Shown here piece after piece: positions 9,884-17,994 of a DNA stretch of 37,791 bases. The translations under genes and the position numbers were made by a program. A model generated the notes under the pieces. The model saw nothing but the letters and a program-made list of their open reading frames with translations. It ran no database searches and was not told the origin of the DNA. Numbering within the stretch: position 1 is the first letter of the stretch; each line of letters opens with the position of its first letter. This DNA is from Vitrella brassicaformis CCMP3155 (lineage: Eukaryota; Protista; Chromerida): contig CDMY01000638.1 in NCBI GenBank assembly GCA_001179505.1, forward strand, positions 1-37,791, given 5' to 3'.

Positions 9884-10465
9884 TGTGAGTGACAGGATCC
9901 AGTGAGATATCAGGAGACAGACAAGGCAAGCCATGCAAACAGGAGGCAGCCAGCAAGCGAGAAAAGAACACTTCACCCACCCAGGCAGGCAGTAGGATCT
10001 GTCCTCACTGACGCACACATCCATTCCACTGCAGACGCCCACGCACACCAACCGGCGTGGATGAGTGAATGGGCGAGGAACGTCTCTCTACCCATCCATA
10101 AGCAGCTGCCACCGCCCGGCCCGCCCATGACAGCACAGGTGGACCGACGGGGCCGTGGGTGTGTCCTTACTGTTTGTCTGTCTGTGTGTCCCCTGTCTGC
10201 CAATCTCCGGGGTGAATGTCAACCATCCGATGCCCAATTGAAACGAAACAAGAGGGTCTCACGTTCCCTCACAGAGACACGAACCCACACACATTGAAGG
10301 TCTCCAGGCATCAACAGACTTAGCTCGATCAAGCAGAAAAAGTCGTCGTCGGACCAAGCAATAAAATCACATGGTACAACCTACTCATACACTGACTCAT
10401 CGATCCCGTCACCCGTCCACACACACGAACTGGATGGGCGGGCTGTGTGGTGTGAGAGATAGAGC

Positions 10466-10544
10466 CAGGCAGCTCGCTATTCATCGGGCTGGGCCGCTCC
10501 CTCCAAGGGTTGCGCAGCCGTCAGCCGTCACTCGCGGCCCCCTG
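10466..10544 (-). promoter_or_regulatory. Eukaryotic SECIS element (type II, GUGA variant) in the 3' UTR of the deiodinase-like gene
   Basis: Minus strand reads CAGG-G-GGC-CGC GA GUGAC GGCUG-AC-GGCUGC GC AA CCCU-UGG-AGGG A GCGGCC-CAGCC CGAU GAAUA GCG-A-GCU-G-CCUG. It shows the UGAC/CGAU non-Watson-Crick quartet, an 11-bp helix II, unpaired AA, an apical mini-stem and a 10-bp helix I. It lies about 215 nt after the stop codon of a gene with an in-frame UGA. Confidence 0.88.
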
Positions 10545-10747
10545 TCACTAATTCACACGCACATGGCAGCAGACGTCACATAGCATGTTATCTATGTGTG
10601 TGTGTGTGAGTGGATGGGGTGTTGGGACGTCGAGGTCAGATACAGAGATGCAGCAAGGGCGCAGCGATTGCATACATTTCCACTGGCCTAAACTCATTCA
10701 TTAGAAACGTACAAAAGCATGTGCGGCCAGCAGCAGCTATGGCCTGT

Positions 10748-11119
10748 CTATGCGGTGATAACATTCTTCCGTAGGAATGCATTGATCTCCATCGACTCGT
10801 ACAGAATGCCGCCGTCGGGCAGACCCAAAGCAGGCACCTGACTCACACAGACACACACACACACGCACACACACCATCCATCGGCCTTGCACATGTGAGT
10901 GTAACAGCACAGCACCTCCTACCTGTGTGAGTCCGCCCCTCTGTTTGAGTTGGTCCTTCTGCGACGGGTCGCCCTTGACGTCCACCAGCGGCAACATGCC
11001 CTGCAGCCCCAAAGCAGTCAGCTGGTCCAGCACATGGACGCAGAAGGGACACTGGGGCATGTAGAAGAGGCAGTAGCCCTCCTTCGACAGATCCTGCACA
11101 CACGCAGCCCACACAATCA

Positions 11120-11153
<34 letters not shown>

Positions 11154-12579
11154 TGTCATCCCATTGCCCACCGTGGCCTTGACACGTTTCATGTTTTCGA
11201 CAAGCGGTGCGGGCGGCGCGTCCTTGCGAGAGGCCTTGACCTCGCTGATATAGTCGCGGCCCGTCTGCTTGCCCATCCACTGCAGCACGGCGTCAAACGA
11301 GTAGTCGAATGGACCAGGCCCACCTGCACCAACGACGCACACACCGCACACAGACCCATTCCCCCTCATAAGTGTGTTTGTTTCCTCGATCTCTGGCCGA
11401 CCGATGAATGCCAGAGTGCCATCGGGTTTGAGGACCATGAGGCGGTCGGGCCAGGCGGCGTAGGCCACGCAGGCCTCGTCGTCCATGCCGTCGATGAGCA
11501 GCTCGCCAGTGACGCCCTTGCCGGCGAAGAAGTCCACCGCCAGCTTGGTCCGCTCGGCGAGGCTCGTTGTCTGCTTGACCTTCAGATTCCCATACACCGC
11601 CCACTCATCAGTCGGGTGGGCCTCCTGTGGCCACACACACACACAGACATGGAGAGATGGCCGCAGTCGTCACCCACAACCTCTGCTGGTGCGTGTGGTG
11701 TGTGCTGTTGAGTTACCCTCATGTAGATGGTGACGAACTTGGCGTCGTCCTTGAGCAGCTGTTGGGCGACCATCAGGTCGTCCATAACAGCCGCAAACTG
11801 ACATGCCAATCAATCAAGACATACAAACAGGGGGAGAAAGGGGCCACTCTCGAGCAAACCGAGGAGGGAGGCGGATCGGTCTCCTCTCTCTCGTGGCACT
11901 TACCGGGGGTCAGCTGCAGCTGCCGAAGTTGAGCACCAGGAACTTGGTGGCGTCGAGGAAGTCGTAGATGTAACGCCTCTCACCCTCAGTCGTGTACACC
12001 ACACAGTTGGGCGCCTTGCGGCCCTCTCTCAGGGTCCAGCGGCCACGTCTGCACACACAACACACACACAGCGTCTCCCTCCCTCCCTCTCTTCCTCGGC
12101 CCCGCGCCCACCTGTGAAGGCGCACATAGATCCAGATGCGGTGGTAGAAGGCGGGATTGGTCAGCGTGTGCCACATGGTCTCGCTGAGGTCATGTCGCAG
12201 CGGGTTGGGCTTCTCGGCGCCCAGCTCTCCGACGCCTTGTCGGTTGGTCATCGGGCCGGGCAGCCCGGTGACCTTGACGCCCAGCTCTCGCGAAGTGGGA
12301 GCATCCGGCTTTGTCGAAGCAGGAGCCTCCTTCCAGCCGAGCAGTCCCTTGATGAAACCCATAACGCACTTGAGAATGTAGCCCTGACAGCAGACAGACA
12401 AGGCACACACACCAACAAGCATGCATCTCATCCTCCCAATGGCATGCTGCTCATCAGCTCAGAGACGTCGCCGACGGACTGACCTGTGTCAAGAATCCGA
12501 CCATAATGGCAAACCTGATGACGTCCAGTGGCAGGTACGCCACCTCCCACAGCTGCTCTGACACCGACGAGGCCCTCAT
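10748..12579 (-). CDS. Iodothyronine deiodinase-like selenoprotein fused to a C-terminal glutaredoxin-like (CPFC) domain, 409 aa, Sec169
   Basis: Exons 12579-12484, 12383-12112, 12048-11904, 11797-11717, 11624-11402, 11323-11172, 11093-10923 and 10837-10748 (1230 nt, all GT-AG, phases consistent). Deiodinase motifs: G..APN, LVLNFGSCS(TGA 11912-11910)PPF, IYMREAHPTDEW, LIDGMDD...AYAAWPDRL, GGPGPFDY. There is an N-terminal hydrophobic anchor. Grx/GST-N motifs: CPFC (11051-11040), TQVP, LYES. Confidence 0.9.
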
Positions 12580-12786
12580 CTTGTGTGGAGGAAGAGATCA
12601 GCACAGCAGTCGACGACCTACACCATGCAGACCGCCGACCACCAGATCCAGGCGCTTGCCGACACCTCTCCGATGCCGCTGGCTAGCGAAAGAATGGATG
12701 AATTGGGAAAGTCCTTCTCTTGGAGCTGAGCTCGCAAACCCCCAAGCTCGCAGCCCGCTCTCCGATTTTCGACGGAAAGGCCAGCG

Positions 12787-15856: not shown

Positions 15857-17548
15857 ATGGTGGATAAAGTCCCGCTGATCAGGGTGTCTGGGAGCTCGTG
15901 GAGGGACCTAGGGCGGCAACACGGGGCGGCTCTTAAGGACCGGATCCACGCAAGCGCCTCGTTCTATTTGGGCTTTTTCCAGGACAAGTGGCACTTCACT
16001 GAGGACGAAATCGAGGAGCAGTGCCGCGGCTACGCAGAGGCCATCCGGTCATTCAACGGCGATTACACAGAGGAGATCGAGGGAATCGCAGAGGCGGCCC
16101 AGCTGCCCGCATGGAAGGTCAATCAGAGCGCACATACGACTCACGGGGATGACCTCTACACGCTAAGTTTTGCTTCTGTTGGATGCCTGCAGGTGTATGC
16201 CCTGAATTGCAGGACAGAGCTCCTCAACTGGAAGAAGAGCGTCACCGAAGCGGCAGCACCACAAGCACGTCCTGAGGATCCAGTCGACGTCGACAGCTCC
16301 TCGTCTGTTGTGGGGGGAGAGTGCACTGCTCTGTGCAATGCTAGTGCGGGGCTGCTGGCACAGAACTGGTATGTGCCCGTCTAGCATACGCATACAAACG
16401 CCGCTGCATACGTACGCGTGCACGTGGGCTGTGGTGCACAGGGATTGGGACGTACGCTTGGAGGATCTGGTGGTGGTCCTGCTGATGGACAAACCTGACG
16501 GCTCACAAATCATGATGCTCACCGAGCCCGGCGTGATTGGAAAGGTGCGTCTGCACACGAACAGGCGAACGGCACATGGGAAAGACGGCAAGATGACCGC
16601 GTGTGTCTGACTTGTCATGCGTGTGGTTCAGATAGGCATGAACAGCGCTGGCGTTGGCGTCACACTACAGCTGCTGCATTGCCCCTGTCCGCGAGCGCCC
16701 CCCGGCACCACCGTGGCTGCTCGTCAGCCGACAGAGGACAGCCACGGCATTCCTATTCACATTCTGCTGAGGACAGTGCTGGACTCGCACTCGGCCACTG
16801 AGGCCTTCACCAAGCTCAGGGGTCTGCCGCAGGGCAAGAGAAACACAGCCAGCTGCATTATCATGGCCGACAAAGGAGGCAACTGCCACACGCTCGAGTT
16901 CGCCAGAGGAGGTGAGTCATGCCATCACCAGCACACTGCGAAGCCATTCACAGTGTCCCAATGACATTTCCTGTGTGTCAGCGATGGACGACATCAAGTG
17001 TCTTCCCGCAACGGACAAGCGCGCCTGCCGCCCCTTCCCCCACTGCACCCCCATCCACACAAACCACTACCTGGGCTGCGGGCTGGAGTGCCAAACGACG
17101 GGGAGCGAGACATCGTATGCGAGGTTCGACACGATGGAGAGGCTTCTGCAGGAGCTGAGCGGCCCGCCGATGCTTGAGGACATCAAGCGGGTGCTGGCGG
17201 ACCGGTCAAATGCAGAGTTGCCCATCCAAAGGCCGTACAAACATGACAAGTAAGTATTTCAGCACCGATGGCGCATTTGGGTGGTTTATGGATATAGACC
17301 TGCTGTGTGTCTTGGTCGGTTGCCGTGTGTGCAGGAAATACGGCCTGATGGGAGGCACAGTGGCCACAGTCATCCTGGAGCTGCAGAAAGGCGTCTTCCA
17401 TGTCACGCGAGGTAGGTCTGTGTGTCGAGGAAAGAGGCTCTTGGCCACGTCTCACTTTTCGTGCATCTGCATTGTGTGTGTGGATGTGGGTGCAGGGAAT
17501 CCCTATGAGCATCCGCTCGAGGCAATTTCGGCGCCGTGGGCGGCATGA
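15857..17548 (+). CDS. Peptidase C45 / acyl-CoA:6-aminopenicillanic-acid acyltransferase-like Ntn hydrolase (7 exons)
   Basis: Family motifs: G..HG...K..I, EEIEGIAEAA, ALNCRTEL, the GE/CT autoprocessing site (Cys codon 16322-16324), AQNWDW, TEPG.IGKIGMNSAGVGV, GIPIHILLRTVL, HTNHYL, S..RF, TVATVILEL. All six introns are GT-AG and in phase. Confidence 0.88.
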
Positions 17549-17994
17549 GAATACATTAATTGTGGATACGCATATTTTTGTAGTACCAGTGGGATGCGTG
17601 TGAAGCCATGTGTGTGGGACCGGTGATTGGCAGACCATTGTGATGATCGTGAGAATCAATATGCACGATAAGATCCATTGCATGCCACGTAGATTGTCCT
17701 AAGGCCGGACGTCCACGCATGAACGTGCACGTGCACATTGAAATCCGTCTCCCATCCACACTCCATTCGCACAACCCATGCATCATTCAATGGTCAGCCA
17801 CTATGAAATCGTCGTGTGTCATGGATACGCAGCAGCATAATGTGGGCTCTAAGAAGCACCCACCTCTCGGCCATCACAAAAGCACATATTCAGCCATCGC
17901 TGGCTTAGGGGTTTGACGGGCAACATGTCCCTAAGGCGCCCCCAAAACCAAACCATGGGTTCCTTGGACATGGCGTAGGTGGCGCAACTCGCAC

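Follow-up and report, generated by a model that had tools for sequence, protein, structure and literature searches.

A predicted deiodinase-family selenoprotein joined to a glutaredoxin-like domain in the chromerid alga Vitrella brassicaformis

The vertebrate deiodinases DIO1-3 (family PF00837; structures 4TR3 and 9H48) have an N-terminal anchor, a thioredoxin fold, and a selenocysteine (Sec, U) set in the motif FGS-C-[ST]-U-PPF with a proximal cysteine at position -2. They also have an EAHxxDxW insertion, the motifs xxP[DE]RL and GGxGP, and a selenocysteine insertion sequence (SECIS) in the 3' untranslated region (UTR). Here we describe a gene with counterparts of these features, among which the anchor is borderline, from Vitrella brassicaformis, a coral-associated alga of the chromerids, which are free-living kin of the apicomplexan parasites. 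The gene lies on the minus strand at 12579-10748 of the window, by which we mean the whole stretch of 37,791 nucleotides that was analyzed (strain CCMP3155, assembly GCA_001179505.1, contig CDMY01000638.1, positions 1 to 37,791). Its predicted product differs from DIO1-3 in having an additional C-terminal glutaredoxin-like domain, in carrying Thr and Pro at the positions of DIO3 His219 and Arg275, in having its distal cysteine in another alignment column, and in belonging to an alga with no known thyroid-hormone system.

Other described systems resemble parts of this arrangement. In the peroxiredoxin-glutaredoxin (Prx-Grx) hybrids, the Grx domain regenerates the Prx domain and couples it to glutathione. 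These hybrids, represented by Haemophilus influenzae HI0572 (PDB 1NM3) and by bacterial clusters that pair AhpC-TSA with Glutaredoxin or GST_N_3, came closest among the named architectures that we found in the Atlas; like the Vitrella protein, they place a thioredoxin-fold enzyme, whose active-site chalcogen is oxidized at each turnover, ahead of a C-terminal Grx domain in one chain. The likeness is one of layout only and the Vitrella protein is not a member, its catalytic domain being of the deiodinase family rather than AhpC or Redoxin, with Sec in place of Cys, in a putatively membrane-anchored eukaryotic protein. Thioredoxin glutathione reductase (TGR/TXNRD3), to which there were weak profile matches, is also a selenoprotein fused to a Grx domain, but there the Grx domain is N-terminal and is joined to a flavoenzyme whose Sec is C-terminal, and the catalytic domains are not homologous. 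For the C-terminal domain taken alone, the best matches in sequence and fold are the N-domains of Cys-type glutathione S-transferases (GSTs) and Grx2 (LigG 4G10, YibF, Leishmania TDR1, Grx2 7TBS), which share a cysteine at the start of alpha1, a VP cis-proline and an E/D-S motif; the Vitrella domain differs in lacking the helical GST_C domain and in having a dithiol CPFC instead of CPFS or CPFA. Finally, Dictyostelium didA and the algal DIO family are Sec-containing deiodinase homologues outside animals, without assigned substrates, for which no Grx fusion has been reported.

What is new here is thus the domain arrangement of two well-known families; the design principle is known from the Prx-Grx hybrids and TGR. 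An earlier note on this DNA knew of no deiodinase-glutaredoxin fusion, and in the literature that we searched, which left most subscription journals outside its reach, we found none published. No paper contained both Vitrella and selenoprotein, and the terms "deiodinase-like" and "glutaredoxin domain" never occurred in the same paper. Where "deiodinase" occurred together with "Grx domain", the papers were vertebrate selenoproteome analyses and selenoprotein reviews, none of them concerned with a deiodinase fusion by title or abstract. The novelty extends to the fusion and not to the family, as DIO-family selenoproteins were already known in algae (PMC7539508). The algal selenoprotein survey lists the fusions SELENOM-pVHL, SELENOM-ShKT and GST-MSRA, has no deiodinase-glutaredoxin fusion, and covers no chromerid (PMC7539508).

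We read the gene as encoding a chain of 409 residues in four parts: an anchor, a thioredoxin-fold domain of the deiodinase family with Sec169, a linker of approximately 39 residues, and a CPFC domain of glutaredoxin or Cys-type GST-N kind that would serve as a built-in Grx relay. By analogy with the systems above, we give this reading, with the Grx domain as redox relay, a probability of roughly 0.6. The individual layers of evidence beneath it differ in strength and are presented in turn.

The RNA and DNA evidence comprises assembled contigs from four (X1 to X4) of the nine public runs that match the stretch; such contigs prove presence rather than absence, and minor alternative transcripts could exist. 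Spliced contigs of 1602 nt (X1) and 1552 nt (X2), from two RNA runs, agree with the window without a mismatch and lack all seven introns, which follow the GT-AG rule and measure 100, 63, 106, 92, 78, 78 and 85 nt. Splicing of the eight exons yields a coding sequence of 1230 nt, or 409 codons and a TAG stop. The motifs quoted in the earlier note all fall in this single minus-strand frame, as it had claimed: NFGSCSUPPF at residues 163-172, EAHPTDEW at 199-206, AYAAWPDRL at 252-260, GGPGPFDY at 273-280, CPFC at 338-341, TQVP at 379-382 and YES at 393-395. The note had also described an anchor, a linker and two domains; both domains are borne out, the anchor is only moderately hydrophobic, and the linker is not the 30 residues proposed but approximately 39 (residues 292-330).

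The ATG at 12579 is the earliest start codon downstream of an in-frame stop, and a 5' UTR of at least 12580-12708 precedes it (RNA contig X1 record 2 extends to 12708). The coding part of exon 1 (12484-12579) holds the start codon and the first part of the hydrophobic anchor. The rest of the anchor, which spans residues 13-48, is in exon 2 (12112-12383; joint 12382/12483 in both RNA runs), where a spacer follows and the deiodinase domain begins. Exon 3 (11904-12048), covered by RNA contigs with 0 differing letters, carries the beta1 strand and the active-site motif NFGSCS-U-PP. After exon 4 (11717-11797), for which both RNA runs show the joints 11797/11904 and 11623/11716, comes exon 5 (11402-11624), which contributes the deiodinase motifs EAHPTDEW and AYAAWPDRL and aligns to DIO3 (4tr3) and DIO2 (9h48). 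The deiodinase domain ends in exon 6 (11172-11323), which contains GGPGPFDY and the larger part of the linker. Exon 7 (10923-11093) completes the linker and begins the glutaredoxin-like domain, from beta1-CPFC-alpha1 up to TQ, and scores 24.4 bits with Pfam Glutaredoxin against a cut-off of 22.9; the codons of the CPFC dithiol motif are at 11040-11051. The coding part of exon 8 (10748-10837) supplies the VP of the cis-proline motif, the YES motif and the TAG stop at 10750-10748, and matches GST_N_2 at 0.0061 on its own. The 3' UTR runs from 10747 to approximately 10075 or beyond, as seen in RNA contigs at 10505-10835, 10219-10531 and 10075-10539 and in RNA depth that continues to approximately 9768.

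The junction between exons 6 and 7, which unites the two domains in one mRNA, is seen in an RNA contig (X2 record 5), as the earlier note had anticipated. Five of the seven junctions appear in the table of joints; the remaining two, 10835/10921 and 11092/11171, were read from consecutive positions of X2 record 5, which bridges them at positions 326 to 327 and 498 to 499. At the latter, 11092 is joined to 11171 with an alignment ambiguity of 1 nt, which the GT-AG rule settles as 11172/11093. Microsatellites of (GT/CA)n and (GA)n type occupy 10836-10883, 11110-11163 and 10170-10194, in introns 6 and 7 and in part of the 3' UTR. We attribute the absence of the two joints from the table to the fragmentation of assembled contigs by these repeats. 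One mRNA extends from at least 12708, takes in the TGA exon and the exons of both domains, and continues into the 3' UTR.

The public protein model (P0001; 398 aa, "unnamed protein product", Vitrella brassicaformis CCMP3155) is identical to our 409-codon model except that residues 161-171 are missing. It uses an earlier donor site that removes the 11 codons of VLNFGSCSUPP (11936-11904, minus strand) and with them the TGA, so that the public record conceals both the selenocysteine and the active site. The RNA contigs contradict this donor. The gene is real, expressed and misannotated.

The only internal stop in the spliced frame is this TGA, codon 169 (11912-11910), which lies within NFGSCS-U-PPF. 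Deiodinase homology is found on both sides of it, with Pfam T4_deiodinase matching at 1.6e-6 in the piece that ends at the TGA and at 3.3e-10 in the piece after it, and the U169 column aligns with the Cys or Sec of deiodinase relatives. The letters of the TGA are identical in all four runs compared. The codon is kept in two further fusion genes, on contigs L001 and L004, that are described below, and in a divergent strain, from which the protein fragment P0024 terminates in ...NFGSCS, directly before the TGA.

Approximately 200 nt downstream of the stop codon is a SECIS-like hairpin of form 2 (10466-10545, minus strand), with GUGA at 10531-10528, unpaired AA at 10511-10510 and GA at 10485-10484. 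It folds with an 11-pair helix II that has a 2-nt bulge, the AA precedes a mini-stem of 4 pairs, and helix I is interrupted. A SECIS core that begins with G rather than A is an accepted minority form, and the core AGUGAC is common to this element and that of L001. In a purpose-made SECIS scanner the hairpin was the only site in the window on either strand, compared with an average of 0.8 sites (per 75.6 kb) over 30 dinucleotide shuffles; we calculate from the shuffle rate that a chance site in a 500-nt 3' UTR on the correct strand would arise with a probability of approximately 0.005. In this second version of the scanner an energy rule was applied to helix I, and the L004 element no longer passes. 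Nor does a plus-strand site at 17505-17550 (ATGA...AA...GA, at the end of a plus-strand gene region at approximately 15857-17550), which had passed the first version and is probably a chance match. In all three genes TAG is the true stop, and each has a SECIS-like hairpin. Genes for the Sec machinery (tRNA-Sec, eEFSec, SBP2, SepSecS) do not lie within the window. Taken together with the transcript, these observations make us confident that the gene encodes a real Sec-containing fusion protein.

The catalytic domain belongs to the deiodinase family. On P0001, T4_deiodinase (PF00837) matches at 3e-21; its score of 76.3 bits exceeds the cut-off of 27, and the match spans positions 46-235 of the 237 in the profile. 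AhpC-TSA and Redoxin give no Pfam match at E<=1. The nearest solved structures by sequence are mouse DIO3 (4tr3, 1.2e-10) and DIO2 (9h48, 5.4e-10). In an alignment with full-length relatives, the core of the family is kept as S-C-S-U-P-P, Y-x-x-E-A-H-P-x-D-x-W, D-x-M-D, A-W-P-D-R-L and G-G-x-G-P. Glu200, His202 and Trp207 of DIO3 are part of the conserved AHxxDGW stretch (PMC7506546), and their equivalents are all present in EAHPTDEW. DIO3 Arg275 holds the thyroxine carboxylate, and Arg275 and His219 have been proposed to hold thyroxine or to relay protons (PMC7506546). The residues at these two positions (Arg275/His219) are His/His in L001 and Lys/His in L004. The vertebrate distal cysteine has no counterpart in the same column; Cys250 is found nine positions further on and is missing from L001. 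The catalytic centre thus resembles that of a deiodinase, and the hormone-binding detail does not.

On P0001 the C-terminal domain (approximately 321-393, or approximately 331-404 of the true protein) matches GST_N_2 (PF13409) at 7.9e-8, Glutaredoxin (PF00462) at 9e-7 and GST_N_3 (PF13417) at 2.7e-6, with 33.2, 29.4 and 28 bits against gathering scores of 25, 22.9 and 22, respectively. The Pfam check suggested in the earlier note thus placed T4_deiodinase, Glutaredoxin and GST_N_3 all above their cut-offs. A profile built from two sequences matched LigG (4g10, 1.3e-7), YibF, pig and human glutaredoxin 1 (approximately 5e-4 to 1e-3), Leishmania TDR1 and Grx2. An AlphaFold2 model of the domain (predicted local distance difference test score 84, predicted template modelling (TM) score 0.77) has the order beta-alpha-beta-alpha-beta-beta-alpha of the thioredoxin/glutaredoxin fold, and its Foldseek matches were small thioredoxin-like proteins, LigG (TM score 0.62, 30% identity), Grx2, GST N-domains and a Chlorella glutaredoxin. 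By their positions, CPFC (338-341), QVP (380-382) and ES (394-395) would be the redox cysteines, the cis-proline and the gamma-glutamyl site; the counterparts in L001 are CKFC, QVP and DS. Pfam finds no GST_C on P0001, and the protein stops at residue 409, directly past the N-domain. The module is therefore a stand-alone glutaredoxin-type domain and not a transferase. A full GST-type dehalogenase of the PcpC or DrcA kind, which we considered for this domain, is ruled out by the lack of GST_C.

We took advantage of an exhaustive HMMER search against 1.84 billion representative proteins, which returned 1300 matches at E<=1e-3, to ask where else the fusion occurs. The best 150 were examined, and these were mostly short deiodinase fragments that begin just past the presumed Sec codon. 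Besides P0001 and the strain fragment P0003, in which CPFC is kept, two of the 150 had a CxxC domain after the deiodinase part. The first, P0002 (1.6e-37, 40% identity, query residues 178-394), derives from transcript L001, which occurs in an MMETSP assembly and in SRA runs ERR558152 and SRR646408. L001 (13-1615) encodes 374 residues in a single frame with a strong anchor, NFGSCS-TGA-GPF, EAHPTDGW, AAWPDRL, GGHGPFGY, a linker, GCKFC, QVPAL, YDS and TAG, followed by a SECIS-like element at approximately 1555-1615. Identity is 40% from past the Sec codon to the C-terminus, and L001 could come from a paralogue in Vitrella or from the orthologue of a related species. The second, P0127, is encoded on L004 (1-1400), a genomic contig (Logan, SRR23287147) of another, unrelated GC-rich eukaryote, beside a chaperonin-like gene. 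Here NFGSWS-TGA-PCF, EAHPTDEW and a linker are followed by a classical class-I glutaredoxin (CQYC, TVP, GGCDD), which is interrupted between CQYC and TVP by one intron at approximately 1029-1112, and then by TAG and a canonical SECIS, AUGA...AAA...GA, at approximately 1325-1390.

In a tree of the deiodinase domain (116 columns) the Vitrella protein and L001 were nearest neighbours and L004 was placed elsewhere, with support too weak to count origins. Because the glutaredoxin modules of L001 and the window come from a different subfamily than that of L004, there have been two fusion events or else one partner domain has been exchanged for another. Word-index protein searches with the open reading frame from the window, P0002 and P0127 returned the queries themselves and one deiodinase fragment, and nothing else. 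The L001 contig was not among the 80 metagenomic deiodinase-like loci that we collected, and TBLASTN searches of these loci with the three Grx domains matched nothing. We conclude that this is a real fusion, and one that recurs, although rarely.

Deiodinase-family proteins carry other additions as well: EF-hands, DUF3179, BNR repeats and tandem deiodinase domains, and ubiquitin and TPR in Atlas clusters, none of them a thiol reductase. In the metagenomes we saw tandem double domains (Cys forms) and EF-hand, DUF3179 or BNR-repeat fusions, among P0004, P0005, P0051, P0082, P0048, P0104, P0149, P0090, P0098 and P0110. The ubiquitin fusions in Atlas clusters came from Mucoromycota.

In the mechanism that we propose, Sec169 would be oxidized by its substrate as it dehalogenates an aromatic compound or reduces a peroxide. 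The proximal Cys167 (of C-S-U, and kept in L001) would then resolve the oxidized selenium to a selenenyl-sulfide, which the tethered CPFC domain would reduce either in cis or between the chains of a dimer. The CPFC domain would then be reset by two molecules of glutathione. By analogy, such an enzyme would be wired to the glutathione pool rather than self-sufficient, and the "self-regenerating" dehalogenase of the earlier note is in this respect overstated, as the Grx domain would still draw its electrons from glutathione. Its Rosetta-stone argument, that fusion of the two domains points to reduction of one by the other, gains from the recurrence of the pairing in L001 and, with another glutaredoxin class, in L004; the relay itself is proposed by analogy.

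The word "dehalogenase" is likewise unproven. Family membership suggests a halogenated aromatic substrate, and the Prx-like relatives and the missing thyroxine-binding residues (Pro and Thr at the equivalents of DIO3 Arg275 and His219) suggest a peroxide or disulfide; protist DIO homologues have no known substrate. We give a halogenated compound somewhat less than even odds.

The reductant of deiodinases in cells is still debated, with glutathione, thioredoxin, glutaredoxin and peroxiredoxin 3 all proposed (PMC9141512). The earlier note took it as established that thioredoxin and glutaredoxin systems can recycle these enzymes in vitro, which is only partly right. In human DIO1, glutathione reduces the selenenyl-sulfide species formed between the proximal Cys and Sec; glutathione by itself was enough, and the proteins thioredoxin and glutaredoxin were either ineffective as reductants or dispensable (PMC9141512).

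A more ambitious reading, which we hold to be doubtful, is that protist deiodinase-family selenoenzymes are glutathione-driven reductive dehalogenases of natural halophenolics, such as reef halotyrosines and bromophenols, with the Grx domain as obligatory reductant. On this reading, because two glutaredoxin classes have been recruited, the fusion would mark glutathione/glutaredoxin as the ancestral reductant of all deiodinases. If true, it would be an evolutionary answer to the long-standing question of the "endogenous cofactor" of DIO1-3.

Returning to the four-part chain with its built-in relay, a number of observations weigh against it, in whole or in part. Some concern the protein itself. 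The residue equivalent to DIO3 His219 is a Thr (KQTTS) and that equivalent to Arg275 is a Pro (GGPGP). The N-terminal anchor is marginal, with a highest 19-residue Kyte-Doolittle mean of 1.69 (residues 13-31), a borderline value, compared with 2.39 for the anchor of L001. L004 lacks the proximal cysteine: position -2 from its Sec is a Trp, and a Cys stands at +2. The reduction of DIO1 by glutathione without Grx or thioredoxin proteins means that Grx coupling is no family-wide rule. Others concern the SECIS. The helix-I rule of our scanner was loosened after the candidate had been seen, and a version that required 5 consecutive pairs missed 10545-10466. Rfam finds no SECIS in the window; however, Rfam 15, even at E<=10, detected none of the three elements (window, L001, L004), and because it misses the textbook AUGA...AAA...GA of L004, its negative reflects low sensitivity and is not evidence of absence. 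For protist SECIS elements, a negative from Rfam carries little weight. Rarity also counts: the fusion accounts for 3 of the best 150 matches (of 1300 in total), no Atlas cluster of at least 50 members combines PF00837 with PF00462, and none of the 80 metagenomic deiodinase-like loci, which are mostly from soil, is fused to a Grx domain or has one within 3 kb.

Variation between strains is the last of these points. The X3 and X4 contigs cover introns and so look like DNA from other strains. They differ from the window at 17 exonic sites, of which 9 change a residue, including P257L in WPDRL; none of the 17 falls in the TGA or CPFC. With approximately three times more nonsynonymous than synonymous sites, 9 of 17 is a small sample that fits moderate purifying selection. 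A diverged copy of the gene (window 10920-12286; X3, X4 and an ENA contig of 3211 nt) encodes protein fragments that are 85-92% identical (P0003, P0024) and points to a second Vitrella-like genotype.

Among the rival explanations, the one that survives best keeps the logic of the fusion and changes the chemistry: the protein would use glutathione to act as a selenoperoxidase or a thiol oxidoreductase, and would be the selenium counterpart of the Prx-Grx hybrids, without dehalogenation. Many deiodinase-family relatives also match AhpC-TSA and Redoxin, the Prx-Grx hybrids are the nearest named architectures, the residues that grip the amino-acid end of thyroxine are not conserved here, and the Dictyostelium homologue didA is not the dechlorinase of differentiation-inducing factor (PMC3205185). 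However, the Vitrella protein itself matches neither AhpC-TSA nor Redoxin, and it keeps the deiodinase-specific EAHxxDxW insertion and the S-C-S-U-P-P core, which ordinary peroxiredoxins lack. We judge this explanation unlikely, though it is a serious contender.

It is also conceivable, but improbable, that the glutaredoxin-like domain does not recycle Sec and instead deglutathionylates membrane proteins, senses redox state to regulate the enzyme, or binds a partner. The linker, of approximately 39 residues, is long, and no structure puts CPFC close to Sec169; DIO1 needs no Grx protein; and of the four strain differences in the C-terminal domain, two alter a residue. Set against these points, one enzyme family has been paired with two glutaredoxin classes, which is hard to explain unless their shared glutathione-dependent redox activity matters, and the CxxC, cis-proline and E/D-S glutathione-site motifs are preserved.

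That the TGA is a true stop, leaving a truncated product of 168 residues with the downstream domains untranslated or made from an internal start, we regard as very improbable. Rfam reports no SECIS, gene callers split transcript frames at the TGA, and the fusion across it is known here from genes and transcripts. Yet deiodinase homology runs in frame through the TGA, which falls exactly on the Sec/Cys column and is kept in L001, L004 and the divergent strain, and all three genes have a SECIS-like hairpin and end in TAG. Least probable of all, to the point of being negligible, is that the fusion is an artefact of chimeric assembly or of read-through of two adjoining genes: assembler contigs, which are our evidence in place of raw reads, may be chimeric, but the same spliced contig came from two runs, no stop separates the domains, the domain join does not differ between the genome and the public model, and the architecture appears again in three independent assemblies of L001 and in L004.

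The four-part chain with its built-in relay bears on both the organism and the family. It sets right a public protein model in which the selenocysteine is concealed, and it extends the selenoproteins of chromerids to deiodinase-like proteins. With the fusion, the reducing half-reaction could also be dissected in a single construct, soluble and complete in itself, through mutation of CPFC and the proximal cysteine. For the family as a whole, the joining of deiodinase domains to two classes of glutaredoxin is independent evolutionary evidence that points to glutathione as the deiodinase reductant, and it suggests, without amounting to proof, that glutathione restores such enzymes after each reaction.

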